From Macrostomum lignano (Eukaryota), in contig NIVC01001485.1 of the NCBI GenBank assembly GCA_002269645.1, forward strand, positions 186,001 through 250,000: 64,000 nt of DNA, given 5' to 3'. The position numbers and the translations under genes were made by a program. Below the pieces are notes generated by a model, which saw only the letters and a list, made by a program, of their open reading frames with translations, did no database searches and was not told where the DNA came from. Below are positions 1 to 63,374 of this stretch, one piece after another (the stretch's first letter is position 1; the number at the start of each line of letters is the position of its first letter).

Positions 1-1
1 C

Positions 2-3469: not shown

Positions 3470-5310
3470 TTCTAAGAATCAGTCCAATATGACAAATTTC
3501 TAAAAATCGGTTCTAAATAGAAACTTTCTAAGAATCGGTCCTTTGTAGCAATTTTCTAAGAATCGGTCCTATGTAGCAATTTTCTAAGAATCGGTCCTAT
3601 GTAGCAACTTTCTAAGAATCGGTCCTATGTAGCAATTTTCTAAGAATCGGTCCTATGTAGCAATTTTCTAAGAATCGGTCCTATGTAGCAACTTTCTAAG
3701 AATCGGTCCTATGTAGCAACTTTCTAAGAATCGGTCCTATGTAGCAACTTTCTAAGAATCGGTCCTATGTAGCAACTTTCTAAGAATCGGTCCTATGTAG
3801 CAGCTTTCTAAGAATCGGTCCTATATAGCAACTTTCTAAGAATCGGTCCTATGTAGCAACTTTCTAAGAATCGGTCCTATGTAGCAGCTTTCTAAGAATC
3901 GGTCCTATGTAGCAATTTTCTAAGAATCGGTCCTATGTAGCAACTTTCTAAGAATCGGTCCTATGTAGCAACTTTCTAAGAATCGGTCCTATGTAGCAGC
4001 TTTCTAAGAATCGGTCCTATGTAGCAACTTTCTAAGAATCGGTCCTATGTAGCAACTTTCTAAGAATCGGTCCTATGTAGCAACTTTCTAAGAATCGGTC
4101 CTATGTAGCAACTTTCTAAGAATCGGTCCTATGTAGCAACTTTCTAAGAATCGGTCCTATGTAGCAGCTTTCTAAGAATCGGTCCTATGTAGCAACTTTC
4201 TAAGAATCGGTCCTATGTAGCAACTTTCTAAGAATCGGTCCTATGTAGCAACTTTCTAAGAATCGGTCCTATGTAGCAACTTTCTAAGAATCGGTCCTAT
4301 GTAGCAACTTTCTAAGAATCGGTCCTATGTAGCAACTTTCTAAGAATCGGTCCTATGTAGCAGCTTTCTAAGAATCGGTCCTATGTAGCAACTTTCTAAG
4401 AATCGGTCCTATGTAGCAACTTTCTAAGAATCGGTCCTATGTAGCAACTTTCTAAGAATCGGTCCTATGTAGCAGCTTTCTAAGAATCGGTCCTATGTAG
4501 CAATTTTCTAAGAATCGGTCCTATGTAGCAACTTTCTAAGAATCGGTCCTATGTAGCAACTTTCTAAGAATCGGTCCTATGTAGCAACTTTCTAAGAATC
4601 GGTCCTATGTAGCAACTTTCTAAGAATCGGTCCTATGTAGCAACTTTCTAAGAATCGGTCCTATGTAGCAACTTTCTAAGAATCGGTCCTATGTAGCAGC
4701 TTTCTAAGAATCGGTCCTATGTAGCAACTTTCTAAGAATCGGTCCTATGTAGCAACTTTCTAAGAATCGGTCCTATGTAGCAAATTTCTAAGAATCGGTC
4801 CTATGTAGCAACTTTCTAAGAATCGGTCCTATGTAGCAACTTTCTAAGAATCGGTCCTATGTAGCAACTTTCTAAGAATCGGTCCTATGTAGCAACTTTC
4901 TAAGAATCGGTCCTATGTAGCAGCTTTCTAAGAATCGGTCCTATGTAGCAGCTTTCTAAGAATCGGTCCTATGTAGCAGCTTTCTAAGAATCGGTCCTAT
5001 GTAGCAACTTTCTAAGAATCGGTCCTATGTAGCAACTTTCTAAGAATCGGTCCTATGTAGCAGCTTTCTAAGAATCGGTCCTATGTAGCAGCTTTCTAAG
5101 AATCGGTCCTATGTAGCAGCTTTCTAAGAATCGGTCCTATGTAGCAGCTTTCTAAGAATCGGTCCTATGTAGCAGCTTTCTAAGAATCGGTCCTATGTAG
5201 CAGCTTTCTAAGAATCGGTCCTATGTAGCAGCTTTCTAAGAATCGGTCCTATGTAGCAGCTTTCTAAGAATCGGTCCTATGTAGCAGCTTTCTAAGAATC
5301 GGTCCTATTA
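3470..5310. repeat. Minisatellite, 28-bp unit TTTCTAAGAATCGGTCCTATGTAGCAAC, about 65 copies
   Basis: Direct tandem repetition with variants AAC/AAT/AGC; degenerate ends. Confidence 0.97.
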
Positions 5311-6031
5311 TACTAAAATTAATCTCCAAGAATCGTCCCAATGCAAAGTTTTTTATAACTACGAGCTTTAAATTGCAAAGATTCGCTTCTGACAAAGAAA
5401 AATAATGAATTTGCACCTTTTACTAACCAATTCTCAATCCTCAACTATAAACAGTATAAAGTCTGCTTTTTTGGCAATCAGAATCAAATAAATAGTACAA
5501 GAGTTTTGGTTACTAATGCGCGTACTTTCGTAAAACTTACCAAAATGACAGCTTGTACTCTCTGGATCGTATTGTCAACATGCAAGCGAATGTTTTGCGA
5601 CTAAAAAACTGACTGAACATCAAACGATTTTCTAGAGTACCGTCCTTCGACTACGAGTACCTCAAATGATACAATTAACATTTTTCAACAGCTACACAAA
5701 CCTACATTTCAATACTGTATATAACAGTAATTATCATAAAACTTCTGAATCTTACATAAGGTACATTCTTTACTAATATATGATATTTGGGTTTTACCAT
5801 TTGAACAGTCGATCTTGAAAACTCCGCTCTTATCTAATTCTGATTATCAAATGGTATTCTAAATACACAGTTAGTGATACAACAAATACTTTCTTTACCT
5901 TATGTACTTTAGCTCATTTCTAAGATGTTCCAGTGCAGTGCTCTTCTAGTGTAGCTGTCTCACGATTTACATGTAAGTTCAGCATTACAAGCTGGTCATG
6001 CGCATGAGAAAAGCATAACGTGTTCATTGCG

Positions 6032-6880
6032 TCAAAAATACGAAAATGGGTCGATGCATTCGCAGGCTCCGTAGTACTTGAATTTACCAGACCAATCAAA
6101 CAAGACGGTGCTGAAAATCCTGGCTCAGATAATGGGATGTTTTTCTTCGTTGGGATTACCGGGACCCCATACTCCGCCGCTGTCAGCGTCCAGCAGCGGC
6201 AGCGGCCAGCCGCAGTCCGCCCACGCCCAGCTGCCGTTGCCAAGAATCGAGGCGCCCACCCAGATTTGCTGGTTGCTGCCAGTCAGGCCAGTTGACGCTC
6301 GCACATCCTGGAGCTCCTCGACGCTGCTCAGGTCGGCGAGCTTCGTCAGCGGCATGGCAAACCCGTCCGAGGTGCTGAGGAAGCTCCGGCAGCTGACGGC
6401 CTGAGCGCTCCAGTTGGCCAACAGCCCGTTCCCAGCAGCCTTGTACAGCGAGCCCTTGAAGCGGCTGCCGCTGACGCCAGGCACCCAGCGATAGTCGGCG
6501 GGACAGAGCCGGTTCGGCTCGAGACCCTCCGACTGCTTGACGAAGACTCGAAGCCTCCTGCTGCTGCAGCCGCTGCTCCACGAGCCGGGATCGAGCAGTA
6601 GCTGCGAGCTGCAGGCATCGAAGGCGAACAGCAGGCAGAGCTGCCGGTCTGAGGAGGACGCAGCTGCCATGGCGAAGGCTCTGCATCTCGGAGCCGCCCC
6701 GCAGCGAAGCGCACAGGCCGCGATGTCAAGGTCGAGCAGCTGGTAGTGAGCTGGGGACACGCAGTTCGAGGTGAGGATCGGGTGGAAGGCGACTCACTGC
6801 CTGCAGCAGCTCAAGGGACGGCTCAGCAGCAGCAGTAGCAACAGTAACGTTTTTGTGTACTTGTATCTATTTGACGACAT
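6032..6880 (-). pseudogene. PAN + C-type lectin copy 2; full length with signal peptide but two in-frame TGA codons
   Basis: ATG at 6880 (MSSNRYKYTKTLLLLLLLLSRPLSCCRQ), TGA at 6794-6796, same frame through the lectin domain, TGA at 6125-6127, then ARIFSTVLFDWSGKFKYYGACECIDPFSYF to the stop at 6032-6034, which aligns with the copy 1 C-terminus. Confidence 0.75.
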
Positions 6881-7621: not shown

Positions 7622-8095
7622 ATGAAGATGCAGAGCCTTCGCCATGGAAGCTGCGTCCTGGCCTCAGACCGGCAGCTCTGCCTGCTGTTCGCCTTCGATG
7701 CTTGCAGCTCGCAGCTGCTGCTCGATCCCGGCTCGTGGAGCGGCGGCTGCAGCAGCAGGAGGCTTCGAGTCTTCGTCAAGCAGTCGGAGGGTCTCGAGCC
7801 GAACCGGCTCTGTCCCGCCGACTATCGCTGGGTGCCTGGCGTCAGCGGCAGCCGCTTCAAGGGCTCGCTGTACAAGGCTGCTGGGAACGGGCAGGTGGCC
7901 AACTGGAGCGCTCAGGCCGTCAGCTGCCGGAGCTTCCTGACCAACTCGGACGGGTCCGCCATGCCGCTGACGAAGCTCGTCGACCTGAGCAGCGTCGAGG
8001 AGCTCCAGGATGTGCGAGCGTCAACTGGCCTGACTGGCAGCCAAAACTACGAAACTAGTACGGAGCCTGCGAAGGCATCGCAACCCTTTTATTGA
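7622..8095 (+). pseudogene. PAN + C-type lectin copy 3, internally deleted
   Basis: Near-identical to copies 1 and 2 over about 7630-8043. Lacks the signal peptide and PAN start, has a frameshift near 7660, and jumps from GSQ to a GACE-like 3' remnant, losing the WVG-EPN segment. Confidence 0.8.
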
Positions 8096-23589: not shown

Positions 23590-23830
<241 letters not shown>

Positions 23831-23864
23831 TATTTCATTCTTAGCTTCCGTCTTAGTGTCTTTT

Positions 23865-31845: not shown

Positions 31846-34800
31846 ATGAGCTTCTCCAATATCATGGAGAACATCCTGCCAGCCATGGTATTCAGCGCTA
31901 GCGCTTTTCGTAGCGGCGCAGTTGGCGTCGTCTCTAGCGGCGCCTCGGCCGCCACCAGCGGTCGTAGCTACGATCGTCGGCATCCTGGTAGCGCCGGCAC
32001 TACCGGAGCTTCGGCGCCAGAAGAAGATTCAAAGCTTTGGTCGGAGTCGGTAGCTACGGCTCAACTCCTGCCGACTCAAGATTTGAATCGGCTAGTATTG
32101 GAGTACTTGGTGCACGAGGGGCACCTGGAGGCTGCCGAGACATTTTGCCGCGAGGCTGGTCTTGAACCGAACATTCTGCAGGTTGGTGCGGGGTCATTGG
32201 GTCACTGACTGAATGATCTGGGGTAGTGCAGGGTCATTGGGTCACTGACTGAATGATCTGGGGTAGTGCAGGGTCATTGGGTCACTGACTGAATGATCTG
32301 GGAAAGTGCAGAGTTAGTGGGTCACTGACTGAAGGATTTGGGAAAGAGCAGGGTCATTGGGTCACTGACTGAATGATCTGGGAAAGTGCAGGGTCATTGG
32401 GTCACTGACTGAATGATCTGGGGAAGTGCAGGGTCATTGGGTCACTGACTGAATGATCTGGGAAAGTGCAGAGTTAGTGGGTCACTGACTGAAGGATTTG
32501 GGAAAGTGCAGGGTCATTGGGTCACTGACTGAATGATCTGGGAAAGTGCAGGGTCATTGGGTCACTGACTGAATGATCTGGGGAAGTGCAGAGTTAGTGG
32601 GTCACTGACTGAATGATCTGGGGAAGTGCAGAGTTAGTGGGTCACTAACTGAATGATCTGGGAAAGTGCAGGGTCATTGGGTCACTGACTGAATGATCTG
32701 GGAAAGTGCAGGGTCATTGGGTCACTGACTGAATGATCTGGGAAAGTGCAGGGTCATTGGGTCACTGACTGAAGGATCTGGGGGAGTGCAGGGTCATTGG
32801 GTCACTGACTGAATGATCTGGGGTAGTGCAGGGTCATTGGGTCACTGATTGTTCACATCAATCAATCACTCAGGAGTCGGAGTCTGGCGAGGACAGCCAA
32901 CGCCGCGTGGCGATTCGATCAGCTGTGCAAGACGGTCGCATAGACGAAGCAATTGAGCTGATCAACGAGGCTAATCCGGAGCTGCTAGATCTTAATCAGA
33001 AGCTGCATTTTCATCTGCGCCGACAGCAGCTTGTTGAGCTGGTTCGCGAGGTGACAGAAGAGTTAAATCGGCTTAAATTGTTAAACCGAGTTTAATAGCT
33101 CAGTGTCTCCCAGGGATAGAAGAATTTCAGCACCGCATGCGTCCCTCTGAAGAATCGTAAATGCTTAAGCTGCTAAAGAAGAATCGATCGTAAAATCATG
33201 AACCGCCCCTTAAGAGCACCTTAAGAGCCTATTAGGAATCATAGAGTATCATTAAGAATTGTATTGTATTGAGCCGTGAAGAGCTTAGAAAGCTCTATTA
33301 CGCCTCGAAAAATCTTAGGGAGCCCCATTACACCCCGAAGAATCGTAGGGAGCCCCGTTTCACCCCGAAGAATCTTAGAGAGCCCCATTTCACCCCGAAA
33401 AATAGTAGAAAGCCATATTTAAAGCTTAAGATCAACATTTATGGCGAAAACCAACGCGTTTCAACCCACTAGGGCCGTCCTCAGGGTATATTTTATCACT
33501 GAACGAAACACTCAATATAAATAAGCAAACGATTGTACTATCTCAAGTGTCAAATTGAAAACGGGAGGGTAACCAATGTACGAAAAACATAAAAAAACTG
33601 GGGGTTGGAGTTAAGCGAGAATAATGGGAGAGAGAGAGAGAGAGAAGGCAAACAGATGTAAAAAAACAAAATGTACACGCAACAAAAAATAATCAAACTC
33701 AAAACACCCTAAAAAGGTGGCCCGCACCACTATGTAGCAACTGCACATTGAGACTGGGATTTTGAGCTTTGATGTGCAGCGCTTCAAGAATGCTAAGCTT
33801 GAATTCAGAGTTAGCACGGTCGATAATTTTAAACAATTCAATCTGTTCTCTGTCACAGCAGCCCTTGCATTCCAGAAGGTGGTCCTGGATAGCAGATTTT
33901 TTCAGCCAATGCTCCCTAACTCTGGTGTGCAGGTGTCTTTTGGTTTTTCCCACGTAAGAGATATTCTGATCTTCAGAACAACAAAATTTTTATAGACGAC
34001 ACCTGCAACTAGAGCACGAGGAACACGGGACTTGAGATTGCTGACAAATTGACACACCTTGGCAGTGCGAAAAACAATCCTAATCGGAGTGATGTACCAT
34101 TTCCGAAAAGATCTCTCAAGCTTCTTTTTCAACAAGATAGACGGGATACCATAGAACGGCAAGATCATCACGGGGTCATCCGGCTTTTTACTATGATTCT
34201 GTTGCAGTCTGCCAGTAACCTTATCAGTGACAAACTTGAAAATCAACCGACTAATGAGATTTTTTGGGTATCCGTTCATACTGAAAATCCTAGTCAAATT
34301 TGTCACCTCCTCATCAAACGCAGCCCAGGAACTACTCAGAGAGTAAGCTCTGTGCAGCATACAATGGATCAGGCCAATATTCCACTGTTTCGGACAGAGG
34401 GCATTGAAATTCAACAGTAAACCAGTAAACGTGGGCTTGCGATAAACCCGAGTAGAGACTTGGCCACTGCTCAGATCAACCTCAACATCGAGAAACGGAA
34501 GTTTTTTACCTCCCATCTCAACGGTGAATTGGATGTTGCTGTGGGTTGAATTCAGAGCCCGAAAAAACTCTTGGTACTTAGCCCGGTCATCAAAAATGAC
34601 AAAAGTGTCATCAACATAGCGCTTGTAGAAAGTTGGCGCACACTCAAGCGACATCCACTCCGTTTCCCAGTGCGGCATGCAAACATTGGCCAGAGTAGGA
34701 GCAAGCGGGCTTCCCATGGCACAACCATCAATCTGGCGATAATATTTGTCATCAAACATGAAGATGCCAGAGGTAGCGAAGCCTAACAACTTTTTGAACA

Positions 34801-36635
34801 CAGTCTTTGGTAACCCAGGCGGATTCATATTGTACACATGATCAGTGGCGAGATCAATAGCCAGCTTCAAAGGGACATTGGTAAAAAGCGAAGTCACGTC
34901 AAAACTGCAGAGAAAATCCTCACTTTTCGGACTGATTTGACTCAAGGCTTGAATGAACTGGCAATTAGAGTTGACGGAGAATTCCTTTGGTATGCATGGT
35001 TTGATCAGAGAATCCAAGTATCTGGCCAGTTCATACTCAGCAGTGTTAATCATAGACACAATCGGTCTCAGCGGTTTGTCAGGTTTGTGAACTTTGCAAA
35101 GGCCGTACAGCTGGCCAGGTTGGCTGCCATTCGGCATAATGCGCTTAAGAATCTCATTGCTAAGATGCTGCTTGGCATGGGTCCTCAAAAAAGTCTGAAG
35201 AGATCTCTCAGCCTTGAGAACAGGATGAGCCATAGTGAGTCAGTGACCTCACTCACAGTTCCAAGACACTGAAATTTAGCCTGATCCTGCACAATGCAAT
35301 TAAGCTTATTCTTGTAGTCATCACTATCCATGATAGCAACGCCGTAGCCTTTGTCATAGCCAACAACCTTGATATTGTCATTCCCTTTAAGCTGCTTCAG
35401 CGTCTGATGAAAAAGCCTGTTCTGCTTACTAGAAATGCTGTTCTGAGCCCTAGACACAAACTGGTCAAAGTCAACAATCAAACGATTCCTAAAATTGTCA
35501 TACAAAGCGGTGCGGGCCCCCATCCTGAGTACAAGAACGAGGAGTGCACTTACTAACCAAGGTCTCAAACTCAGCAGCAATGTGAAGTTTGTTCTCCCAT
35601 TATTCTCGCTTGACTCCAACCCCCAGTTTTTTATGTTTTTCGTACATTGGTTGCCCTCCCGTTTTCAATTTGACACTTGAGATAGTACAATCGTTTGCTT
35701 ATTTATATTGAGTGTTTCGTTCAGTGATAAAATATACCCTGAGGACGGCCCTGGTGGGTTGAGGCGCGTTGGTTTTCGCCATAAATGTTGATCTTAAGCT
35801 TTATTTATTTGCTATTAATTAAGCGGGCAACTCTACCAAAGCCATATTTAGCCCCAAATGATCGTAGAGAGCCCCATTTAGCCCTTACACAAGCGTAGAG
35901 AGCCCTATTTAGCCCTTACACAAGCGTAGAGAGCCCCATTTAGCCCCCACAGAATCGTAGGGAGCCACATTTAGCCCAAAGAATCGTAGAGAGCCCCATT
36001 TAGCCCTTACACAAGCGTAGAGAGCCCCATTTAGCCCCCACAGAATCGTAGGGAGCCCCATTTAGCCCCCACAGAATCGTAGGGAGCCACATTTAGCCCA
36101 AAGAATCGTAGGGAGCCCCATTTCACCCCATAGAATCGTAGGGAGCCTACTTTTGCCTTAAAGAATTGTAGAGGGCCTCAGTTGGGGCACTTAATAAACT
36201 AATCGTCGTCCGCCACGAACGAAACCTCAGGGCCGCCTATGCCAGGCGCTCCAATTTGCCCAGTCCAGTTTGGCCAGCCTGGCCGAGACCCAGCCTGATA
36301 GTTGCCTGTCCGACTTAGAAGAATGCATGGCCTTGCTGGCGTTCGAGCGTCCGGCTGAATCGGCCAGTTTCGGTCGCTGGCTATCGTTAAGCCATCGGGC
36401 TAAGCTGGCTAGCGAAGTCAACGCTGCTCTGTTAGAAGCTACAGCGGACGACGAAGGCGGCGAATCATCGACAGTCGATCGGGACAGCTGCGGCGACGGA
36501 CTGGACTATCAGCTCAGACTGCTGCTCTGGAGTCAGGATCGGCTCACGGCCGCTGGCGTTTCTTATCCGCGAATAGTTGACGTAGAAACTGCCAGGTACT
36601 CGGAGCAGCCGCAGCAGCGCGATTCGGCCACCTAA
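31846..36635 (+). CDS. GID8: GID8/TWA1-like CTLH E3 ligase subunit (LisH-CTLH-CRA), about 305 aa, 3 exons
   Basis: Exons 31846-32181, 32874-33050, 36231-36635, all phase 0 and GT-AG. LisH LNRLVLEYLVHEGHLEAAETF, CTLH IRSAVQDGRIDEAIELIN..PELL, CRA LEECMALLAF..P...KLASEVNAALL. Confidence 0.85.
32185..32850. repeat. Minisatellite, 40-bp unit GGGTCATTGGGTCACTGACTGAATGATCTGGGAAAGTGCA, filling GID8 intron 1
   Basis: Starts within about 10 nt of the donor and ends about 25 nt before the acceptor. Confidence 0.95.
33270..33420. repeat. About 30-bp AAGAATCGTAGGGAGCCCCATTTCACCCC family, left of the Penelope element
   Basis: Same family resumes at 35840-36170 and 37780-38365. Confidence 0.85.
33447..33490 (-). 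ncRNA. Minimal hammerhead ribozyme motif in Penelope 3' pLTR (intact core)
   Basis: CUGAGGA-c-GGCCC(uagu)GGGUU-GAAA-cgcg-UU with palindromic AACGCGUU stem III. Minimal hammerheads in PLE pLTRs are established. Confidence 0.7.
35731..35775 (+). ncRNA. Mutated hammerhead motif in inverted pLTR copy (GAAA changed to GAGG)
   Basis: CTGAGGACGGCCCTGGTGGGTTGAGGCGCGTT; core adenines changed at 35763-35764. Confidence 0.6.
35840..36170. repeat. About 29-30-bp AGAATCGTAGGGAGCCCCATTTAGCCCC array, right of the Penelope element
   Basis: Tandem repetition. Confidence 0.9.
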
Positions 36636-37420: not shown

Positions 37421-37779
37421 TGTAGATTTCTGAATTGCAGATTGCGTGTGTAAATATGAATTTATAAATACTGACAGATTCTTCAGCCCTGACGTTGACT
37501 TAAACCGTATAGACGGTCTTTACATAAAAGAATACAAATCATGAAATCTGTAAAAATTATGACCTTCATTGAGGAAGAGCTGAATCGGCCATTTTATTTT
37601 TACCTCGAAAGTTTATCCCTAAATGGGAATTGTGTGCGATAAACTAATCACAGATGAAACTTTTCTTGTATTTTCACTGAGCAGCGCATAACTGCTTATT
37701 AATTTGGAGTTTGGGCTTTGTGTTAATCTTTTTCGTATTATTGTATAATCTCGGCCTGTCTCTATAAAGAATCGTAGAA

Positions 37780-38365
37780 ACCTCCAGCTCACCATGAAGA
37801 ATAGTAGAGTTCTTGGAGAAACATAGACCGCCCCAAAGAATATAGAAAAGCACTAAGTCACCCCAAATAATCGTAAAAGGCCCCATAAAGAATCGTAGGG
37901 AGCCCCATTTCATCTTGAAGAATCGTAGGAAGCCTCATTTCATCCTAAAGAATCGTAGAGAGCCCCATTTCACCCAGAATAATCGTAGAGAGCCCCATTT
38001 CATCCTGAAGAATCGTAGGAAGCCTCATTTCATCCTAAAGAATCGTAGAGAGCCCCATTTCACCCAGAATAATCGAAGGGAGCCCCATTTCATCCTGAAG
38101 AATCGTAGGAAGCCTCATTTCATCCTGAAGAATTTTAGGGAGCCCCATTTCACCCAGAAGAATATTAGGGAGCCCCATTTCACCCCGAAAAATCGTAGGG
38201 AGCCCCATTTCACCCCTAAAAATCATAGGGAGCCCCATTTCATCCTGAAGAATCGTAGAAAGCCCCATTTCACCCCGAAGAATCATAGGGGCCTCATTTC
38301 ATCCTGAAAAATCGTAGGGAGCCCCATTTCACCCCGAAAATCGTAGGGAGCCCTGTTTCACCCCG
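37780..38365. repeat. 30-bp AAGAATCGTAGGGAGCCCCATTTCA(T/C)CC array
   Basis: Tandem repetition; same family as in GID8 intron 2. Confidence 0.9.
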
Positions 38366-45570: not shown

Positions 45571-45641
<71 letters not shown>

Positions 45642-46233: not shown

Positions 46234-46379
46234 GCTGACCCGTCTTTTAATGGGAGTGGGGGAATTAAGGAAAAGAGTACCGCTACTATTTTGTTTATTT
46301 TTTGACAGTATTTTTTAGTTGATCCAGCAATTGTTTTAGATCCTAAAAATATGCATTAATTTTCATCCTTAATCCCCAT

Positions 46380-47160
46380 TTGGAAGAATCGGTCTCAAAT
46401 CCTCAATTTGGAGGAATCGGTCTCAAATCCCCTATTTGGAAGAATCGGTCTCAAATCCCCTATTTGGAGGAATCGGTCTCAAATCTTTTTTTTGGAAGAA
46501 TCGGTCTCAAATGCCCAATTTGGGAAAATCGGTCTCAAATCCCCAATTTGGGAAAATCGGTCTCAAATCCCCTATTTGGAAGAATCGGTCTCAAATCCCT
46601 TATTTGGAAGAATCGATCTCAAATCCCCTATTTGGAAGAATCGGTCTCAAGTCCCCTATTTGGAAGAATCGGTCTCAAGTCCCCTATTTGGAAGAATCGG
46701 TCTCAAATCCCCTATTCGGAAGAATCTTTCTCAAATCCCCTATTTGGAAGAATCGGTCTCAAATCCCTTATTTGGAAGAATCGATCTCAAATCCCCTATT
46801 TGGAAGAATCGGTCTCAAATCCCCTATTTGGAAGAATCGGTCTCAAGTCCCCTATTTGGAAGAATCGGTCTCAAATCCCCTATTCGGAAGAATCTTTCTC
46901 AAATCCCCTATTTGGAAGAATCGGTCTCAAATCCCTTATTTGGAAGAATCGATCTCAAATCCCCTATTTGGAAGAATCGGTCTCAAATCCCCTATTTGGA
47001 AGAATCGGTCTCAAGTCCCCTATTTGGAAGAATCGGTCTCAAATCCCCTATTCGGAAGAATCGATCTCAAATCCCCTATTTGGAAGAATCTTTCTCAAAT
47101 CCCCTATTTGGAAGAATCGGTCTCAAATCCCCGTTTGGGAGAATCGGTCTCAAATCCTCA
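46380..47160. repeat. Minisatellite, 28-bp unit TGGAAGAATCGGTCTCAAATCCCCTATT, with a 168-bp (6-mer) higher-order repeat
   Basis: Variant TCGATC recurs at 46613, 46781 and 46949. Confidence 0.93.
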
Positions 47161-47649: not shown

Positions 47650-49230
47650 TCATAGAGTCCTACATTAGAATCCGTCATAAAGTCAGAATCCGTCACAGAG
47701 TCATGTAATCCTTCATTAAGTCATAAAGTCTGTCTTAGAGTCATAGAATCAGTCATAGAGTCATAAAAACCGTCGTATAGCTATAGAATCCGTCATAGAA
47801 TCATAGAGACCGTCACAAAATCCGACAGAGTCACAAAATCCGACAGAGTCACAAAATCCGTCAGAGTCACAAAATCCGTCAGAGTCACAGAATCCGTCAG
47901 AGTCACAGAATCCGTCAGAGTCACAGAATCCGTCAGAGTCACAGAATCCGACAGAGTCACAAAATCCGTCAGAGTCACAGAATCCGTCAGAGTCACAAAA
48001 TCCGTCAGAGTCACAGAATCCGTCAGAGTCACAAAATCCGACAGAGTCACAAAATCCGTCAGAGTCACAAAATCCGTCAGAGTCACAGAATCCGTCAGAG
48101 TCACAAAATCCGTCAGAGTCACAAAATCCGACAGAGTCACAAAATCCGTCAGAGTCACAAAATCCGACAGAGTCACAGAATCCGTCAGAGTCACAAAATC
48201 CGACAGTCACAGAATCTGACAGAGTCACAGAATCCGTCAGAGTCGTAGAATCCGTCATAGTCATAGAATCCGTCATAGAGTCAGAATCCGTCATAGACTC
48301 AGAATCCGTCATAGAGTCAGAATCCGTCAGAGTCAAACCGTCATAGAGTCATAGTAACCGCCATAGAGCCATAGAAACCATCATAGAGTCATAGAAACCA
48401 TCATAGAGTCATAGAAACCATCATAGAGTCATAGAAACCATCATAGAGTCATAGAAACCATCATAGAGTCATATAACCCGTCATAGTCATAGAATCCGTC
48501 ATAGAGTCAGAATCCGTCATAGATTCAGAATCCGTCATAGAGTCAGAATCCGTCAGAGTCAAACCGTCATAGAGTCATAGTAACCGCCATAGAGCCATAG
48601 AAACCATCATAGAGCCATAGAAACCATCATAGAGTCATAGAAACCATCATAGAGTCACAGAAACCATCATAGAGTCATATAACCCGTCATAGTCATAGAA
48701 TCCGTCATAGAGTCAGAATCCGTCATAGAGTCAGAATCCGTCATAGAGTCAGAATCCGTCATAGAGTCATAGTAACCGCCATAGAGCCATAGAAACCATC
48801 ATAGAGTCATAGAAACCATCATAGAGTCATAGAAACCATCATAGAGTCATATAACCCGTCATAGTCATAGAATCCGTCATAGAGTCAGAATCCGTCATAG
48901 AGTCAGAATCCGTCATAGAGTCAGAATCCGTCAGAGTCAAACCGTCATAGAGTCATAGTAACCGTCATAGAGCCATAGAAACCATCATAGAGCCATAGAA
49001 ACCATCATAGAGCCATAGAAACCATCATAGAGCCATAGAAACCATCATAGAGTCATAGAAACCATCATAGAGTCATATAACCCGTCATAGTCATAGAATC
49101 CGTCATAGAGTCAGAATCCGTCATAGAGTCAGAATCCGTCAGAGTCAAACCGTCATAGAGTCATATAACCCGTCATAGTCATAGAATCCGTCATAGAGCC
49201 CGTCATAGTCAGAACCCATCATAAAGTCCT
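47650..49230. repeat. Compound 18-20-bp array (CACAGAATCCGTCAGAGT; CATAGAATCCGTCATAGAGT; CATAGAAACCATCATAGAGT)
   Basis: Tandem repetition, ending about 110 bp before the DDX10 ATG. Confidence 0.93.
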
Positions 49231-49343: not shown

Positions 49344-52300
49344 ATGGCAACAACAATATCAGAAGCGGCTGCATCTTCATCAGTCGATTCCCAGCAACAG
49401 TCAAATAAACCCGACAAGCCGATTCGAAAGTTCGCCGATTTCCGCTTAAGCGCTCGGACATTAAAAGGCCTGTCTGGCGCCAATTTTGTCAAGCCAACCG
49501 ACATTCAACGGTTAGCGATTCCGCCCGCGCTGTCCGGCTCCGACATTGTCGCCTCGGCCAAGACAGGCAGCGGCAAGACGCTGGCCTTTGTTGTGCCCGC
49601 CTTGGAGCTGCTTCATCGGGAGCGCTGGAGCCGCGATCTCGGACTGGGCGCTCTGATTGTGTCTCCAACCAGAGAGCTGGCCTATCAGATATTCAGAGAG
49701 CTGCGTCGTGTCGGCGCGAAGCACCAGTTCTCGCTGGGCCTGGTCACCGGCGGCTATCACGATGTTAAAGAGCAGGGCTCTCGGGTTGGCAAGATGAATA
49801 TCCTGGTTGCTACGCCTGGCCGGCTGGTCCAGCATCTGTCTGAGAGGCCCGACTTGAGCACCGATAATCTGCGATTGCTAGTGCTGGATGAGGCTGATAG
49901 GTGAGGCAGTTTGTGCGCTGATAATTCATTTTTGTTTGCCTACTAAAGAGGCTTGTGCCATTCACTGCTGTGAGTGCCAAACAACCCCCCCCCCAAGGCA
50001 CAGAAAAGTGTACATGCCTGACGATTAGAAAGTCAGGGACGCTGCACACCCTGTGCCCTGTGTGATCGTGTCATAGCTCATAGAATCCGTCATAGGGTCA
50101 ATAGAAACCACCATAGAGTCATAGAAACCGTCATAGCTCATAGAATCCGTCATAGGGTCAATAGAAACCACCATAGAGTCATGGAAACCGTCATCGCTCA
50201 TAGAATCCGTCATAGGGTCAATAGAAACCACCATAGAGTCATAGAATCCGTCAGAGGGTCAATAGAAACCACCATAGAGTCATAGAATCCGTCATAGGGT
50301 CAATAGAAACCACCATAGAGTCATAGAATCCGTCATAGGGTCAATAGAAACCACCATAGAGTCATAGAATCCGTCATAGGGTCAATAGAAACCACCATAG
50401 AGTCATAGAAACCATCATAGAGTCATAGAATCCGTCATAGGGTCAATAGAAACCACCAAAGAGTCATAGAATCCGTCATAGGGTCAATAGAAACCACCAT
50501 AGAGTCATAGAAACCACCATAGCTCATAGAATCCGTCAGAGGGTCAATAGAAACCACCATAGAGTCATAGAAACCGTCATATAGTCATAGTAACCGTCAT
50601 AGGGTCAATAGAAACCACCATAGAGTCATAGAAACCACCATAGAGTCATAGAATCCGTCATAGGGTCAATAGAAACCACCATAGAGTCATAGAAACCGTC
50701 ATAGAGTCATAGAATCCGTCATAGGGTCAATAGAAACCACCATAGAGTCATAAAAACCATCATAGAGTCATAGAAACCGTCATAAAGTCATAGAAACCGT
50801 CATAGAGTCATAGAAACCGTCATAGAGTCATAGAAACCGTCATCTACTCATAGAAACCGTCATAGAGTCATAGAATCCGTCATAGAGTCATAGAAACCGT
50901 CATAGAGTCATAGAAACCGTCACCGACTCTTAGAACCCGTCATAGGGTTCATAGGGTTCTAGAATTCGTCAACGAGTCATAGCGTCATATAATCCGAATC
51001 CGTCAAGACTCATAATTGGTCATAAAGTCATAAAAACTGTCATAAAGTTCTAGAATCCGTTATAGTGTCCTAAAATCTATGAGCGCTTTGAGCGCTTTGA
51101 ACACAAATCTCTGAACGCGGGCTTTTATGTACTCAAGAGTGAGCAGGATAGGCGGAATTGCCTATTGAGAGTTAAGCGTCTTGCTCAAGGACACAAATTG
51201 TACCAGCGGGTTCGGGAATCGAACCCCCAACCTCCAAGTCGCGAGTCCGACGCTCTAACCACAAGGCTACAACCCCACTCACTACTGCATGCACCAATCC
51301 AGAATCCTACATCTGGGCTTTAAGGCCGAGCTAGACGCTCTATTGGACTACCTGCCTGCCGAACGCCAGACTCTACTGTTCTCGGCTACTCAGACGCGCA
51401 GCGTTCAAGATCTTGTCCGATTGAAAATGCGCCAGCCAGTCTGTCAAGTTGACGCCAGTAAGCTGGCTGCCACAGCAACGCCTGACGGACTCCGACAGGG
51501 TTTCGTTCGCTGCCAGTCTGTGTGCGACAAACCGCGCTACCTTTGGCAGTTCATCACTGGCAATAGGCAGAGAAAGAGTATTGCGTTCTTTGCCACCTGC
51601 AAACAGGTGAGATTTGCCTTGCATCTCAACTGGATTCAATAATCTCCTTGCTACATTTTTCACAACCTTTAGATCTACCACGATAAAAAAACGCACATCT
51701 AAAACCATTGCTAGACCCACAACCCCCATACATCTACCACCCCCCTGGATCTCCAACCTATAGATTTATAATAATCTATAGATCTTAAACATCTGCATCT
51801 AGATGTCGCAGCCTCTAGATCTCTAAAACCTCTAGATCTCTAAAACCTCTAGATCTCTAAAACCTCTAGATCTCTAAAACCTCTAGATCTCTCAAATGGA
51901 ATGATCTCTAAAACCTCTAGATCTCTCAAATGGAATGATCTCTAAAACCTCTAGATCTCTAAAACCTCTAGATCTCTGAAACCTCTAGATCTCTCAAATC
52001 TCTAGATCTCTAGAACCTCTTAGATCTCTCAAACCTCTAGATCTCTCAAACCTCTAAATCTCTCAAATCTCTAGATCTCTCAAACCTCTAAATCTCTAAA
52101 ACCTCTAGATCTCTAAAACCTCTAGATCTCTAAAACCTCTAGATCTCTAAAACCTCTAGATCTCTAAAACCTCTAGATCTCTCAAATGGAATGATCTCTA
52201 AAACCTCTAGATCTCTCAAATGGAATGATCTCTAAAACCTCTAGATCTCTAAAACCTCTAGATCTCTGAAACCTCTAGATCTCTCAAATCTCTAGATCTC

Positions 52301-56270: not shown

Positions 56271-56355
56271 GGCAGGATAAAGTCTAAATCATCATATTTC
56301 TCTACTTCATGCAATAGTTCTAGAAGCAGAAGCAGGAACAACAAACTCAGCGACA

Positions 56356-56649
56356 ATGTCAGACCCTGAGCAGCTGCTGGACTCCATAGAAGCGGCCTGC
56401 CGGTCTCGTCGTGTCGGTTTAGCGACCTCTTTAAATTCGTTTCGTCAGCAGCTGGAGCAACGCCAGGCGGCTCAGCTCAACGCCGCCTGTGGCTGCTTCC
56501 CTGACAACAATGCCAGCAATAGCGGAGACGGCAATGTCGAGAAATTCGATGACGGCACCGAAAATGCTGAAGCTGTTCGTCAACAGATTGACGAGTTGCA
56601 ACGGCTGAAATCCGCTTTGGAAGCTCAGATGGCTGTTGTTAAGCTTTGA
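56356..56649 (+). CDS. Unknown 97-aa protein, single exon, probable C-terminal coiled coil
   Basis: ATG-started, non-repetitive ORF with the same GC-rich composition as neighbouring exons. Family not recognised. Confidence 0.55.
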   Translation: MSDPEQLLDSIEAACRSRRVGLATSLNSFRQQLEQRQAAQLNAACGCFPDNNASNSGDGNVEKFDDGTENAEAVRQQIDELQRLKSALEAQMAVVKL

Positions 56650-56809
56650 CTAGTCAGAGAAAGTGGTCTGGGAATGTATGCAGTTTTTTGGCCTACAAGT
56701 GCACCTTTTCTCTGTGTGGGGTCAAGTTTCCCTAATCCTTTCCCAGAAACCCTTGGATTTAGTTGAATCCCATCCTAAGACTTCAGAATTGCCTAATCCC
56801 TCCTATGAT

Positions 56810-57120
56810 ATCCCTAATCGCCTCCCAAGACACTGATATCCCTAATCCCCTCCCAAGACACTCAGATATCCCTAATCCCCTCCCAAGACACTCAGATATC
56901 CCTAATCCCATCCCAAGACACTCAGATATCCCAAGCCCCTCCCAAGAGACACTCTGATATCCCTAATCCCCTCCCAAGACACTCAGATATCCCTAATCCC
57001 CCCTCCCAAGACACTCGGATATCCCTAATCCCTCCCAAGACACTCGGATACCCCTAATCCCCTCCCAAGACACTCGGATATCCCTAATCCCCTCCCAAGA
57101 CACCCAAATATCCCTAATCC
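56810..57120. repeat. About 30-bp ATATCCCTAATCCCCTCCCAAGACACTCAG array
   Basis: Tandem repetition. Confidence 0.9.
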
Positions 57121-57279
57121 CTTTTGTTGTTGTCCTGCATTTTATCATGAATATAAGCGGCGTGACAGTCTGCAGTTTCATTACAAATAAACAGTTTTTT
57201 GTATATAGCAAATACAAATAAATGAAAATGTGAATTTACTTCAAGTATTCATTTCTAATCAACTTTTTTGTTTTTCCCT

Positions 57280-57555
57280 CTAGGTGAGTCACACTTTCCA
57301 GCTATGTGAGTCACTGTTACTCTCTAAGTCTAAGTCACATTTTCCCTCCAAGTGAGTCATTTTTTCCTATAGATGAGTCACCTTTTCCCGCTAGGTGAGT
57401 CATTTTTTCCTATAGATGAGTCACCTTTTCCCGCTAGGTGAGTCATTTTTTCCTATAGATGAGTCACCTTTTCCCGCTAGGTGAGTCATTTTTTCCTATA
57501 GATGAGTCACCTTTTCCCGCTAGGTGAGTCATTTTTCCGATAGGTGAGTCACCTC
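57280..57555. repeat. About 43-bp array containing 12 TGAGTCA motifs and repeated TAG/GTGAGT splice-like junctions
   Basis: Unit GGTGAGTCATTTTTTCCTATAGATGAGTCACCTTTTCCCGCTA. Confidence 0.9.
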
Positions 57556-57611
57556 ATTCTAATGGTTTTGCCGCTTAATTCCTGCCAACGGAACCAGACA
57601 GACATCAAATT

Positions 57612-60600
57612 ATGAAAGGCGGATCAAGAGGAATTAAAAGGCAGAAAGCGAAGACAGTCAAGGACGGGTCGTCCTCGGCAGCGGCGGCGCCAGTCACAAC
57701 TGATGTCGTTATCGACACAGATGCCCTGTTTAGCGCCAAAGAGAAATTCGACGCTTCGAATGCTCTGGCTTTGCCCGGCATGCGTCGGCGAAAACGTCGA
57801 CCTACCGACGATCAAAGCGACGACGACGACGACAATGGCGAAGATGACGAGGAGTCGAAAAAGCGACGCAAACGGTTGAAATTGAAACGCCTGAAGCGGG
57901 AGCTGCAGTCGGACTTGTTGACAAAAAAGAAGCGCAAGGAATTGGAGAGAGTTGTGAGGAAGAAGGAGAGCGCCAAGACTCGATCGCAGCTGTGGGAAGA
58001 GCTGCGGCAGTATCAGTTCCCTAGGGAGGAGGGCGAAGCCAACGCTACGGCGCACCTGTTGCCCTCGGCTGCAATCCACGGCGTAGCCAGGTGAGAAGGT
58101 ACTCAAAGTCTAGAATCCCACATGGAAATAATCTTGAGTTTGATCCCCTAGAATCCCACATGGGAAGAATCTTGAGTTTGATCCCCTAGAATCCCACATG
58201 GGAATAATCTTGAGCTTGATCCCCTAGAATCCCACATGGGAATAATCTTGAGTTTGATCCTCTAGAATCCCACATGGGAATAATCTTGAGTTTGATCCCC
58301 TAGAATCCCACATGGGAAGAATCTTGAGTTTGATCCCCTAGAATCCCACATGGGAATAATCTTGAGTTTGATCCTCTAGAATCCCACATGGGAATAATCT
58401 TGAGTTTGATCCCCTAGAATCCCACATGGGAATAATCTTGAGCTTGATCCCCTAGAATCCCACATGGGAATAATCTTGAGTTTGATCCTCTAGAATCCCA
58501 CATGGGAATAATCTTGAGTTTGATCCCCTAGAATCCCACATGGGAAGAATCTTGAGTTTGATCCCCTAGAATCCCACATGGGAATAATCTTGAGTTTGAT
58601 CCTCTAGAATCCCACATGGGAATAATCTTGAGTTTGATCCCCTAGAATCCCACATGGGAAGAATCTTGAGCTTGGTTCTCTAGAATCCCACATGGGAAGA
58701 ATCTTGAGCTTGATCCCCTAGGATCCCACATGGGAAGAATCTTGAGTTTGATTCCCTAGAATCCCACATCGGAAGAATTTTGAGTTTGATCCTCTAGAAT
58801 CCCACATGGGAATAATCTTAGTTTGATCGTCTAGAATCCCACATGGGAATAATCTTAGTTTGATCGTCTAGAATCCCACATGGGAATAATCTTGAGTTTG
58901 ATCCTCTAGAATCCCACATGGGAATAATCTTGAGTTTGATTCCCTAGAATCCCACATCGGAAGAATTTTGAGTTTGATTCCCTAGAATCCCACATGGGAA
59001 AAGTCCCACATAAGAAGAATCTTGAGTTTGATCCCCTAGAATACATGGGAAGAATCTTGACTTGATCCCCCCTATAATCTCCCATGGGAAGAATCTTGGG
59101 CTTGGTCCTCTAGAATCCCACATGGGAAGAATCTTGAGCTTGATCCCCTAGAATCCCCAATGGGAAGAATCTTGGCTTTGATCCCCTAGAATCCCACATA
59201 GAAACAATCTAGAGTTTGTCCTCTAGAATCCCACATGGGAAGAATCTATTACTTGAGTTTGATCCCATAGAATCTCACATGGGAAAAATCTAGAACTTGA
59301 GTTTGATCCCATAGAATCTCACGTGGGAAGAATCTAGAACTTGAGCTTGGTCCCATAGAATCTCACATGGGAAAAATCTAGAACTTGAGTTTGATCCCAT
59401 AGAATCTCACATGGGAAAAATCTAGAACTTGAGTTTGATCCCATAGAATCTCACATGGGAAAAATCTAGAACTTGAGTTTGATCCCATAGAATCTCACGT
59501 GGGAAGAATCTAGAACTTGAGCTTGGTCCCCTAGAATCCCACATGGGAAGAATCTTGAGATTGATTTAAAATCCACATTGATCCTTCTTACATTCGCTAA
59601 TCCATATATTTTTAAACAGCAAACGAGCCAAGCAATCAGATAAGAAGAAATCCCCAGGAGACAACTCTGAACCAGACGCCAACACTGACGCTTCAATAAA
59701 GCCTCTATTAAAAGGTTGGCAACAGCAAAAGCAGCAACTAGTTAAAGACAGTGACAGTAGCACCGACACGTCTGACATTACCGTGAGCAGTAGCGAGTCA
59801 GAATCTGAGCTTGAGCACGATGACGCTCCAGCCTCAGCATCTATTACTGTTGATGCGCAAACTAATGATGAATCCAAAGCAACAGCGGAAGCAGAAGCAG
59901 AAACAGCAATTAAAGAACACCGACCGGCAACATTTGTTCAGGTGCGCAGATCGAAGGCTGTACAGCAGCGTAGACTGGAGCTGCCCATATTGTCCGAGGA
60001 GCACAGCATCATGGAGGCGGTGTCTGGCAATGATGTTGTACTAATTTGCGGTCAGACAGGTAGCGGCAAGACTACTCAAGTGCCGCAGTTTCTCTACGAG
60101 GCTGGTTACGCCTTAGACGGTAGACGGGTTGTTGTAACCGAGCCTCGGCGTGTTGCCGCCATAGCAATGTCCGAGCGAGTTGGACAGGAGCTCGGTCTTG
60201 GCCGAAATCGGGTGGCCTATCAGATTCGCTATCAGGGCAATGTGACCGAGAATACTGTTATTAAATTTGTGACGGATGGAGTGCTGCTTAAGGAGGTTAG
60301 TTGTGTGTTAAAGTGTGTTGTTTTAAATCTTAGTTTACATTGGCCTTATAAACAGTGGACTCAAAACTTGAAGGGTGGGGGGTTCGTTTCCCGATCTCAC
60401 TGAAACAATTTGTGTCTTTAATTGCAAGATTTTAAGACACTTAACTCTGAATTGCTTCAGTTCACCCAGCTGAAAAATGGGTGCCGCATTAGCTGGGGTA
60501 ATTGAAGCTGTGTGTGGCGACCCCCAGCAGTCATTGGACTGAACAGCCGTACGCAGCTTTCAGATGCGCCGCGCAATAGCTGTGGTTGCGCTGTCGGTTG

Positions 60601-63374
60601 CACACCTGGTCCAGTTGGGGCTGGTGTAATCAATTATTTTTATTAACAGGTACTCATTTATGGTTTATGTGGAGGGGGAGCTCGTCAGAATCTTGGGTCG
60701 CGATCCCTGGTTCAATTTCGTGGCCGGTCACATTCATCTTGAGGCTTGTGTGCACGAGAATTGGCGATGCACACTCAGGAAGCTGTTCTGGAACGGTTTT
60801 TGAGAATCTTTCGTAAGGATTTCAAAAAACTGCTGCGAAACGGTTGCTAAGAATCGCTCGGAAGCGGTTTCTAAGAATCTCTCGGAAGCGGGTTCGAAGA
60901 ATCGCTCGGAAACGGTTTCTAAGAATCGCTAGAAAAAGGTTTCTAAGAATCGCTCGGAAACGGTTTCTAAGAATAGTTTCAAAACGGTTGCTAAGAATCG
61001 CTCGGAAGCGGTTACTAAAAATCGCTTGGAAGCGGTTTCTAAGAATCGCTTGGAAGCGGTTTCTAAGAATCGCTTGGAAGCGGTTTCTAAGAATCGCTAG
61101 AAAATGGTTTCTAAGAATCGCTCGGAAACGGTTTCTAAGAATAGTTTCAAAACGGTTGCTAAGAATCGCTCGGAAGCGGTTACTAAAAATCGCTTGGAAG
61201 CGGTTTCTAAGAATCGCTTGGAAGCGGTTTCTAAGAATCGCTTGGAAGCGGTTTCTAAGAATCGCTTGGAAGCGGTTTCTAAGAATCTTTCTGAATTGGT
61301 TTCTATTCTAAGAATCTTTCTGAAATAGTTTCCAAGAATCTTTCTGAATTGGTTTCTAAGAATCTTTCTGAAACAGTTTCTAAGAATAGTTTCAAAACGG
61401 TTTCTAAGAATCGCTCGGAAGCGGTTTCTAAGAAACGCTCGGAAGCGGTTTCTAAGAAACGCTCGGAAGCGGTTTCTAAGAATCGCTCGGAAGCGGTTTC
61501 TAAGAAACGCTCGGAAGCGGTTTCTAAGAATCGCTCGGAAGTGGTTTCTAAGAAACGCTCGGAAGCGGTTTCTAAGAATCGCTCGGAAGCGGTTTCTAAG
61601 AAACGCTCGGAAGCGGTTTCTAAGAATCGCTCGGAAGCGGTTTCTAAGAAACGCTCGGAAGCGGTTTCTAAGAATCGCTTGGAAGCAGTTTCTAAAAATC
61701 GTTCTGAAATGTTTTCTAAGAATCGTTTTGAAACGGTTTCTAAGAATCGTTTAAGAATTGCTGTACCTAATGTTGGTCGTATCCCTATAAAAATTGCCAT
61801 AACAATAACGCATTACTCCCCAGCTCGAATCCGACGTATTGTTGCGCAACTATTCTGCCGTGGTAATCGACGAAGCGCACGAGCGGACCATCTACACCGA
61901 CATTCTCATCGGCCTGCTCAGCCGTGTCGTCTGTCGGCGGCGCCGTCTTGGCCACCCGTTGAAACTAATTGTTATGTCGGCCACTCTTCGCGTGCAAGAC
62001 TTCTTAGCCAATGAGCGGCTGTTTCCCAGCGCTGCGAAGCCACCGCTGGTTCGCATTGATGCCAGACAGTACCCAGTGACTGTGCACTTTAACAGGCGAA
62101 CTGAGGACGATTATTTGAGGGCCGCGTACGCTAAAGTGTGTCGATTGCACACCTCACTACCGCCAGGTGGAGTTCTTGTCTTTGTCACTGGCGCTCAGGA
62201 GGTAATTAAAAGATTTGAATTTACACGTAGAATAGTGTACTAATCTACAGGTACTTGAAATGATAACGAAGTTTTTTAAGAAAAGAACTCAAAATCCAGT
62301 CGAAAAATGAATCGAAATCGGTCTTCGAATCCAGATTTTTGAAATAATTCAAAATCGGCATTCAAATTCAGATTTTAAATGAATCTAAATTCGGTCTTTA
62401 AATCCAGATCTGAAAATAATTCAAAATCGGCCTTCAAATCCGGATGTTTAAAAGAATCCAAAATCGGCCTTCAAATCCGGATTTTAAAAGAATCCAAAAT
62501 CGGCCTTCAAATCCGGATTTTAAAAGAATCCAAAATCGGCCTTCAAATCCGGATTTTAAAAGAATCCAAAATCAGCCTTCAAATCCGAATTTCAAAAGAA
62601 TCCAAAATCGGCCTTCAAATCCGGATTTTAAAAGAATCCAAAATCGGCCTTCAAATCCGGATTTTAAAAGAATCCAAAATCAGCCTTCGAAAATACTTTT
62701 TAAATTAATCTGGCACCTGCAATTCCACCAAGGTGGTGACTCTGTGCTCTTGGCTGCGCCGCGCTTTCCGCAAGTCGAAGTCAACAACAACAGCAACGGC
62801 ATCTTCTTCAATCAACGAAGCCGAAGCCGAAGACCGCCGTCTGGAGATCTGCCTGGACAACTACTCGGCCGTGCCAGCTGACGAGGACGCCGAGCTACAC
62901 GAAGCTCCAATCGATGCAGAACTTCGTCGGGACGGTCGCCTTCAGGCTGACGACGATAATGATGACGACGACGATGATGGCAACGTCGAAGTCGATGCCG
63001 ACGTCGAAGGCTTCCGTCTGACTGACGAAATCGGCGACGAGCCAACGAAGCGACAGCTCGGCAGCTCCGGCCCGGTGCACGTAGTCGGCCTGTACTCGCT
63101 GATGCCGCCGGAGCGTCAGGCAGCGGCGTTTCGCGAACCGCCCGACGGTCACCGAATGATTTTCGTAGCGACTAACGTGGCCGAGACGTCCATCACGATT
63201 CCCTGCGTCCGGTACGTTGTGGACACCGGCCGGGTGAAGACTAAAGTCTACGACAAGGTCACCGGCGTGTCGACCTTTGTTGTCACCTGGACTAGCAAGG
63301 CTTCGGCCGAGCAGCGGGCTGGCCGAGCCGGCCGGCTGGGACCCGGACACTGCTACCGGCTGTACTCTTCGCAG
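57612..63374 (+). CDS. DHX37: DEAH-box RNA helicase DHX37/Dhr1-like; first 4 coding exons, gene continues past the window
   Basis: Exons 57612-58090, 59620-60295, 61824-62201, 62733-63374, phases consistent. Motifs [72 protein letters not shown]. Confidence 0.88.
58110..59560. repeat. 38-bp CTAGAATCCCACATGGGAATAATCTTGAGTTTGATCCC array filling DHX37 intron 1
   Basis: Tandem repetition. Confidence 0.95.
60335..60640 (+). mobile_element. Degenerate CORE-like SINE
   Basis: GGGTTCGTTTCCCGA...ACAATTTGTGTC...AAGACACTTAACTCTGAATTGCTTCAGTTCACCCAGCTGAAAAATGGG, homologous to the 1231 copy. Confidence 0.65.
60835..61760. repeat. 24-bp GGTTTCTAAGAATCGCTCGGAAGC array in DHX37 intron 2
   Basis: Tandem repetition. 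Confidence 0.93.
62300..62695. repeat. 36-bp AAAAGAATCCAAAATCGGCCTTCAAATCCGGATTTT array in DHX37 intron 3
   Basis: Tandem repetition. Confidence 0.92.

Follow-up and report, generated by a model that had tools for sequence, protein, structure and literature searches.

In the vertebrate minisatellites defined by the Jeffreys "core", loci with different unit lengths share a short core sequence; the human core is G-rich and is linked to recombination hotspots. Here, we describe minisatellite arrays that share the hexamer AGAATC in the flatworm Macrostomum lignano. They lie in a stretch of 64,000 nucleotides (GenBank assembly GCA_002269645.1, contig NIVC01001485.1, positions 186,001 to 250,000 of the forward strand), called the window below, and all positions are counted from its first letter. 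Like the vertebrate core-sharing minisatellites, the flatworm arrays combine different unit lengths (here 18-44 bp) with a short core, a constant orientation, local homogenisation and degenerate edges. Unlike them, they have an A/T-rich core, four of their families are related beyond the core, and they lie mainly in introns of housekeeping genes. We lean towards the view that the AGAATC arrays are one diverged minisatellite superfamily that spread by insertion in a preserved orientation, after which re-amplification gave new unit lengths.

Three other systems are close to this one. The "library" model of satellites and minisatellites is mostly applied to long satellites of heterochromatin and to comparisons between species. 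The flatworm arrays are similar in that each variant (F01/F22, F14/F23, F15a/F15b and F09a-c; Table 1) is locally dominant and lengths change by insertions, deletions and internal duplications, and they differ in that the variants are short arrays among exons within 60 kb of one genome. In Caenorhabditis elegans, one ancestral 35-bp unit occupies many introns, its period and sequence have been remodelled, there is a link to transcription, and the arrays lie inside recognisable Helitron copies (bioRxiv 10.64898/2026.08.08.743475). The flatworm arrays resemble these in the dispersal of units into introns followed by remodelling of period and sequence, and differ in that no carrier, termini or common flanks were found. 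Finally, CR1-type long interspersed elements (LINEs) have a tail octamer, TTCTGTGA or ATTCTRTG (PMC2612034). Two blocks of family F15, TCACAGAA and TCATAGAA, are exact reverse complements of this octamer of LINE and short interspersed element (SINE) tails. Unlike such tails, only F15 and some units of F09b and F21b fit, the units are 18-44 bp and not 8 bp, and no LINE body adjoins the arrays. Simple and tandem repeats make up 15% of the M. lignano genome (PMC5730564). A literature search found no paper characterising these repeats, and a search with the unit strings returned only unrelated primer matches.

AGAATC in repeat units of the plus strand

Tandem Repeats Finder (TRF) detected about 29 minisatellite arrays, covering 21 kb or 33% of this gene-rich window, which were grouped by unit into 24 families (F01-F24). 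AGAATC was present on the plus strand in ten of the arrays, amounting to 8,724 bp, 13.6% of the window and about 41% of the array DNA. In this count F21 was taken once; the tally of AGAATC lists its 38-bp and 44-bp parts separately. The ten arrays have seven unit types of 18-44 bp, repeated head-to-tail in 4-83 copies with 83-97% matches (TRF). A first-pass annotation of the window had already proposed seven AGAATC-containing units, all on the plus strand and fringed by degenerate copies. According to the TRF results and the raw sequence, all seven were where it had placed them, with AGAATC on the plus strand, and the fringe units were found as well (e.g., at 3445, 3475, 5329, 33151, 33180, 37768, 47186, 47248, 60687 and 60803).

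The whole window contains 260 AGAATC and 12 GATTCT on the plus strand. As many as 228 of the 260 were inside the AGAATC arrays, and no array contained GATTCT. Outside the arrays and their fringes, 14 AGAATC and 12 GATTCT were counted, compared with 13 and 17 expected from composition. The AGAATC signal is real and is confined to the arrays.

Because amplification inflates raw copy counts, each family was counted once for the enrichment. AGAATC occurred in 7 of the 24 families and AAGAATC in 6 of the 24, making them the top 6-mer and the top 7-mer among all k-mers. When the consensus units were shuffled 2000 times, the best 6-mer usually reached three families and at most five, and the best 7-mer at most four. 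The enrichment over shuffled units therefore held in this window. On the other hand, the description "seven different families" stood only in part: the seven unit types are real, but their independence was overstated because at least four of them are demonstrably homologous, as described below. After these four were collapsed, the finding that each of the other three carries either of two cluster-core 6-mers had a P value of about 0.02 (either strand).

The collapsed count is also what gives some room to compositional coincidence, namely that A/T-rich units of 20-40 bp share a hexamer by chance. Four lineages remain after collapsing, a null allowing all 6-mers reaches four families in about 19% of the shuffles, and agreement of four lineages in strand has a P value of 0.125. 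However, 7 of 24 families exceeded the maximum of five in the shuffles, the directed test gave the P value of about 0.02 for the three remaining families, and the extended matches of 11-13 bp and the whole-unit alignments are not chance. We thus consider coincidence very improbable.

With respect to orientation, six of the seven families have AGAATC on the sense strand. If the arrays are related by descent, six to eight copying events would all have preserved orientation (P of about 0.004-0.016). Between 31 and 64 kb, the identified host genes are all on the plus strand. Since all identified genes there read in this direction, strand relative to transcription is inseparable from absolute strand, and the strand bias could equally reflect orientation relative to transcription or a property of the motif. 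The arrays near the sole minus-strand gene, F04-F06, have neither AGAATC nor GATTCT. F04 (16454-16776) lies downstream of this poly-Q gene, and its reverse complement, AATATCTCGGGTCTCA, is weakly like the F14 unit AAGAATCGGTCTCA; this likeness would fit an orientation relative to transcription, at a score of 17, which is the noise level. A same-orientation relatedness of all arrays was ruled out, since among pairs of families lacking AGAATC the same-strand alignment was better in 58 and the opposite-strand alignment in 45.

Kinship of the units and their proposed descent

The units at 46 kb (F14, 28 bp) and 62.5 kb (F23, 36 bp) aligned at 25 of 33 positions across the whole unit, and their difference in length amounts to one internal duplication of 7-8 bp. 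The units at 3.5 kb (F01, 28 bp) and 61 kb (F22, 24 bp) have the 13-mer TTTCTAAGAATCG in common, together with further colinear matches, and F01 and F14 have the 11-mer AAGAATCGGTC in common; both strings had been pointed out in the first-pass annotation and were confirmed. Similarity outside the hexamer was assessed by removing the hexamer and shuffling the remainders. It was significant for F01-F22 (P = 0.004) and F14-F23 (P = 0.02) and borderline for F01-F14 (P = 0.07), and the summed similarity over all 21 pairs had a z score of 2.2. BLAST matches between families rose above shuffled controls only among F01, F14, F22 and F23. The earlier suggestion that one seed radiated into many unit lengths is thus borne out for these four families, which are colinear beyond the hexamer and differ by small insertions and deletions; for F09, F15 and F21 it is not demonstrable.

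Changes at a smaller scale can be followed within single families. In two cases an exon has arrays of one family on either side: DDX10 exon 1 lies between F15a and F15b, and the last exon of the LisH-CTLH gene between F09b and F09c. This placement shows short-range copying in direct orientation. Units have been remodelled within arrays, as seen in the transition of F21 from 38-bp to 44-bp units, the latter with two AGAATC each, and in the 18-, 20-, 41- and 61-bp periods of F15. In F21 and F09c, AATAATC and AAGAATC replace one another, in either direction. The F09 array is interrupted by a retroelement with a reverse-transcriptase frame, which has 212-bp inverted terminal repeats (33420-33631 versus 35803-35593, 97% by self-BLAST). 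On either side of it stands the 13-bp sequence AAAGCCATATTTA (33408-33420 and 35838-35850), a target duplication in direct orientation. Since this element was inserted within the F09 array, F09a and F09b were formerly one array. By eye, the motifs of the element are Penelope-like.

We propose that an ancestral unit containing ..AAGAATC(G/C).. would have been copied to several sites, mostly introns and spacers of plus-strand genes, and that every copy would have kept the same orientation. At each site, slippage or unequal exchange would have re-amplified and homogenised the copy locally, and small insertions, deletions and internal duplications would have brought the unit to its present 18 to 44 bp. 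On this view, AGAATC would be the part of the ancestral unit that has been preserved best, rather than a demonstrated functional site. We infer that F09, F15 and F21 share this origin. The arrays are in different introns of unrelated conserved genes, which argues for insertion or local copying and not for duplication of whole segments; spread by insertion, rather than by segmental duplication, is what we infer. The orientation bias could come from orientation-preserving insertion or from retention relative to transcription. Such retention or orientation relative to transcription is usual for intronic mobile DNA.

Several results weigh against descent from one unit. All of the data come from one 64-kb window. 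F09, F15 and F21 have nothing significant in common beyond the core and 1-3 flanking bases. Because their exact 8-mer match is within the noise of 253 two-strand comparisons (best opposite-strand score, 19), their common descent is not demonstrated. Taken as four independent lineages, the families agree in strand with the P value of 0.125 given above. Self-BLAST outside the arrays revealed no homology between the flanks of AGAATC arrays, and local alignments of 300-bp flanks with one another stayed at noise level, even for the closest pairs. No terminal inverted repeats were found around the arrays when each upstream flank was compared with the reverse-complemented downstream flank (z <=3 for all 22 tested), and no target duplications, a further insertion signature, were found. 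Descent from one unit must also explain how the hexamer survived while the remainder diverged beyond recognition. Ascertainment is part of the answer, in that only families keeping the hexamer were selected, and some constraint on the core is conceivable. BLAST found no solitary units of the AGAATC families elsewhere in the window.

A separate set of families, F08 (32186-32848), F10 (36697-37429), F11 (39189-40066) and F18 (55750-56270), may be a second same-strand core-sharing group. Its candidate core is TTGGGT..CACTG, GGGTAAT, CTGTGTAG.ATT.GG, with pair scores of 17-19 that barely stand out from noise.

Alternative readings: a functional core, mobile elements and local birth

The first-pass annotation had offered a second possibility, that AGAATC is a nicking or protein-binding site. 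As such a putative site, it would seed amplification or be retained by it, and unrelated units would converge on it. Conservation was assessed by folding each array onto its own consensus and scoring it position by position. The core was slightly above the average in 7 of 9 arrays. Compared with other 6-nt stretches of the same unit, it was not better conserved (mean percentile 0.39, z = -1.2, nine arrays). Point variants of the core, such as AATAATC, AAAAATC and AGAAACC, are common, and it has been lost from many units of F09, F15a and F15b. It was kept in 8 of the 16 units of F09c (with the variants AATAATC, AAAAATC and AAGAATT), 36 of the approximately 80 units of F15a, and 13 of the 44 units of F15b, in which the core is mostly AGAAACC. 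Moreover, 17 of the 24 families were amplified without AGAATC; some of their arrays are larger than AGAATC arrays, including the second-largest array in the window (43450-45222). The motif has no fixed phase at the array ends, where the edges are degenerate and decay gradually. A common hairpin of single-stranded DNA was rejected, since a fold better than that of shuffled sequences was seen for F22 alone (z = -3.4), apart from a weak one for F23 (z = -1.9). The background copies counted above are neither enriched nor strand-biased. Finally, common descent links four of the seven families and thereby accounts for most of what looks like convergence.

What speaks for a functional site is that F09, F15 and F21 have only the core in common with the other families, yet above chance (P of about 0.02), that the core persists across families that are otherwise unalignable, and that its strand is strictly consistent. 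In addition, an imperfect palindrome (TTTCT-A-AGAAT; GGATTTT-AAA-AGAATCC) has the core of F01, F22 and F23 as one of its arms; in the F22 unit it reads CGGTTTCT-A-AGAATCG. This context, GGWTTCT-N-AGAATCS, was not found in the other four families; in the three that have it, it is compatible with a putative dimeric binding site. Weighing both sides, the claim of a nicking or protein-binding site was not supported, and we regard a site that seeds amplification or is retained by it as improbable. It is just as hard to credit the more specific prediction that a Macrostomum factor recognises AGAATC, in several families as an arm of the imperfect palindrome GGWTTCT-N-AGAATCS, and seeds or propagates minisatellites in a fixed orientation to transcription. 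Such a factor may be a retroelement reverse transcriptase/endonuclease or a host DNA-binding protein. If this were true, much of the unusually high content of tandem repeats would go back to one sequence-specific process, which would also explain the introns that are almost entirely one array.

Mobile elements could have supplied the repeats in another way. The arrays would then be the expanded 3' tails or internal repeats of retroelements or transposons in a fixed orientation to transcription, with AGAATC lying within a tail motif. F15 comes closest to this. It contains the blocks TCATAGAG, TCATAGAA and TCACAGAA, and its block TCAYAGAA, read on the opposite strand, is the CR1-type tail octamer TTCTRTGA (TTCTGTGA/TTCTATGA). 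Many matches of the string CATAGAGTCATAGAAT to a (CAYAGAAT)2 dimer were found, at 15 of 16 positions, and tandem copies of the octamer contain AGAATC across every unit junction. Both CACAGAATC and CATAGAATC are also present in F09b and F21b. From these matches, F15 is a fair candidate for an expanded retroelement tail, and insertion of such a tail in antisense would explain its sense-strand AGAATC. Intronic retroelements typically show an orientation bias relative to transcription, which we also count in favor of a mobile origin. The octamer is, however, absent from F01, F14, F22 and F23, and a tail of this kind is lacking from the one LINE whose 3' end can be seen in the window (after 28537). 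Moreover, the CR1 tail motif is documented in amniotes and not in flatworms. As a source of F01, the LINE upstream of it was rejected, since only a truncated fragment (1372-2050) is present and no reverse-transcriptase frame continues towards the array.

Two short dispersed elements lie near some of the arrays. One is a tRNA-derived SINE with three copies, at 1226-1363 (+), 51162-51276 (-) and 60347-60469 (+), a head with A- and B-box-like sequences and the conserved body TGTGTCCTTGAGCAAGACACTTAACTCT. Neither ARAGORN nor Rfam called these copies; ARAGORN reported no tRNA in the window, and Rfam reported no family at the gathering score and, at relaxed thresholds, only generic hairpin matches at 10.6 kb. 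The minus-strand copy, also delimited as 51168-51279, is about 80 bp to the right of F15b; in the orientation of the SINE, the array comes after the 3' side of the element. By eye, a tRNA-like head at about 60675-60735 (+) precedes F22. The other element, of about 75 bp, also has three copies, at 49981-50071 (+), 63671-63751 (+) and 63430-63519 (-). The latter two form a miniature inverted-repeat transposable element (MITE)-like inverted pair (63430-63751), and the last 36 bp of its right end have been amplified into the 36-bp array F24 (63718-64000). The end of the solo copy directly adjoins the start of F15b, so that two of the three copies are in contact with an array. Minisatellites borne by Helitrons in C. 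elegans introns provide a precedent (bioRxiv 10.64898/2026.08.08.743475). On the other side, hidden Markov model searches found no further copies of the two elements beside arrays, the adjacency of the SINE is a single case, and, as reported above, no two AGAATC arrays have non-repeat flanks in common and none has terminal inverted repeats. We consider a mobile-element origin of the arrays doubtful, though less so than a functional site; as a refinement of descent from one unit, a mobile vehicle is plausible.

A further alternative is birth in place. Here, the arrays would have been seeded by local duplication at intron 3' ends and exon starts that read ..YAG|AATC.. on the sense strand, which would explain both the core and its orientation. 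DDX10 exon 1 ends with GCTGATAG| (49901) and exon 2 starts with |AATCCTACAT (51301). The spliced junction, GATAGAATCCTACAT, resembles the F15 unit CATAGAATCCGTCAT, which occupies the intron between these exons and also the sequence preceding exon 1. Just after F22, exon 3 of the DHX37-like gene starts with CAG|CTCGAATCCGACG (61824), and likely branch-point sequences (GCTAATCC and TTAATCTGG) coincide in part with the final degenerate units of F21 and F23. However, the likeness of the junction was noticed post hoc and may be coincidence, with a roughly estimated P value of 0.01-0.05 after allowing for choices, and the exon starts at 59621 and 62730, which follow AGAATC arrays, show nothing similar. 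The motif is preceded in five of the seven families by AAG, a poor acceptor, and F01, F14 and F15a are outside identified introns. Birth in place is therefore highly unlikely in our estimate, and descent of the arrays from one dispersed unit is the explanation that we favor.

Gene context, neighboring elements and implications

The coordinates of the AGAATC arrays, the inserted retroelement and the identified genes are given in Table 1.

Table 1. Arrays with AGAATC, the retroelement within F09 and identified genes of the window
Feature	Positions	Strand	Unit or basis of assignment	Remarks
F01	3469..5308	+	28-bp unit TTTCTAAGAATCGGTCCTATGTAGCAAC, 65.7 copies, 97% matches (TRF)	65 AGAATC, 0 GATTCT; degenerate units at 3440-3530 and 5309-5345
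F09a	33150..33420	+	left part of 30-bp array (..CCCCGAAGAATCGTAGGGAGCCCCATTTCA..); TRF 33284-33414	AGAATC at 33151, 33180, 33339, 33369
Reverse-transcriptase element	33421..35837	-	RVT_1 match; open reading frame (ORF) 33902-35233	2.4 kb
F09b	35838..36177	+	right part of F09a array; 30/31-bp units, some CACAGAATCGTAG	last intron of LisH-CTLH gene
F09c	37750..38360	+	30-bp unit AAGAATCGTAGGGAGCCCCATTTCATCCTG, 15.8 copies	
F14	46371..47157	+	28-bp unit AATCCCCTATTTGGAAGAATCGGTCTCA, 28 copies	between WD40 gene and DDX10; fringe to ~47253
F15a	47666..49198	+	18/20-bp units CGTCATAGAGTCAGAATC, CGTCAGAGTCACAGAATC, CATCATAGAGTCATAGAAAC	ends ~145 bp upstream of DDX10 ATG
F15b	50070..51090	+	F15 family; 20/41/61-bp periods	DDX10 intron 1
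F21	58110..59565	+	38-bp unit CTAGAATCCCACATGGGAATAATCTTGAGTTTGATCCC, grading into 44-bp units	DHX37-like intron 1, from 20 bp past 5' splice site to ~55 bp before 3' site
F22	60837..61749	+	24-bp unit GAAGCGGTTTCTAAGAATCGCTCG, 38 copies	DHX37-like intron 2; decayed fringe from ~60775
F23	62315..62688	+	36-bp unit AAATCGGCCTTCAAATCCGGATTTTAAAAGAATCCA, 10 copies	DHX37-like intron 3
Poly-Q gene	17.9-20.4 kb	-		
LisH-CTLH gene	LisH 31744-32208, CTLH 36270-36635	+	Pfam, ORFs	
WD40 gene	40268-40882 onward	+	Pfam, ORFs	
DDX10	49344-55457	+	Pfam, homology to M. lignano DDX10, tblastn	
DHX37-like helicase	57612-63602	+	Pfam, tblastn	

In DDX10 and the DHX37-like gene, nearly each intron is occupied by one distinct minisatellite array (49902-63700): F15b, F16 and F17 in the former, and F21, F22, F23 and F24 in the latter. 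For some of these arrays, only 20-55 bp remain between the array and the splice sites. One exon, at 49344-49904, codes for the N-terminal half of a DEAD-box helicase of the DDX10 type. It has 94% identity to M. lignano A0A1I8IH58, which would make the two paralogues or homeologues, and about 57-60% to the next best matches. Neither the last DDX10 exon nor the ORF through array F14 gave a match in protein searches, and exact-pattern scans of metagenome and viral contigs gave none either.

Other elements were observed mainly in the left part of the window. A sequence with a 211-aa ORF and no Pfam match is present in three copies, 96% identical, at 1-586 (+), 6167-6755 (-) and 7628-8045 (+); the first two form an inverted pair whose 5.6-kb spacer contains F01. 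A 250-bp near-perfect palindrome at 10570-10821, 92% self-complementary, matches plant microRNA hairpin models below the threshold and is therefore probably a MITE-type hairpin. Two related 35-bp arrays (13819-14570 and 15000-15606) have a strong skew of G over C, and the spacer between them contains an 81-bp inverted repeat (14600-14680/14877-14957). Two microsatellites of about 60 copies each, (CTGT)n/(TGTC)n, at 23591-23831 and 45547-45774, both adjoin minisatellite arrays.

Core-sharing minisatellite families have long been known. What is new is the flatworm instance, with introns of housekeeping genes that are almost wholly minisatellite and one core-sharing group dominating. Should the pattern be restricted to this region, it would be no more than a common case of related repeats. 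Should it hold genome-wide, it would point to one propagating source behind much of the repeat load of M. lignano, and the way in which minisatellites move between introns and acquire new unit lengths could be studied in a tractable system.

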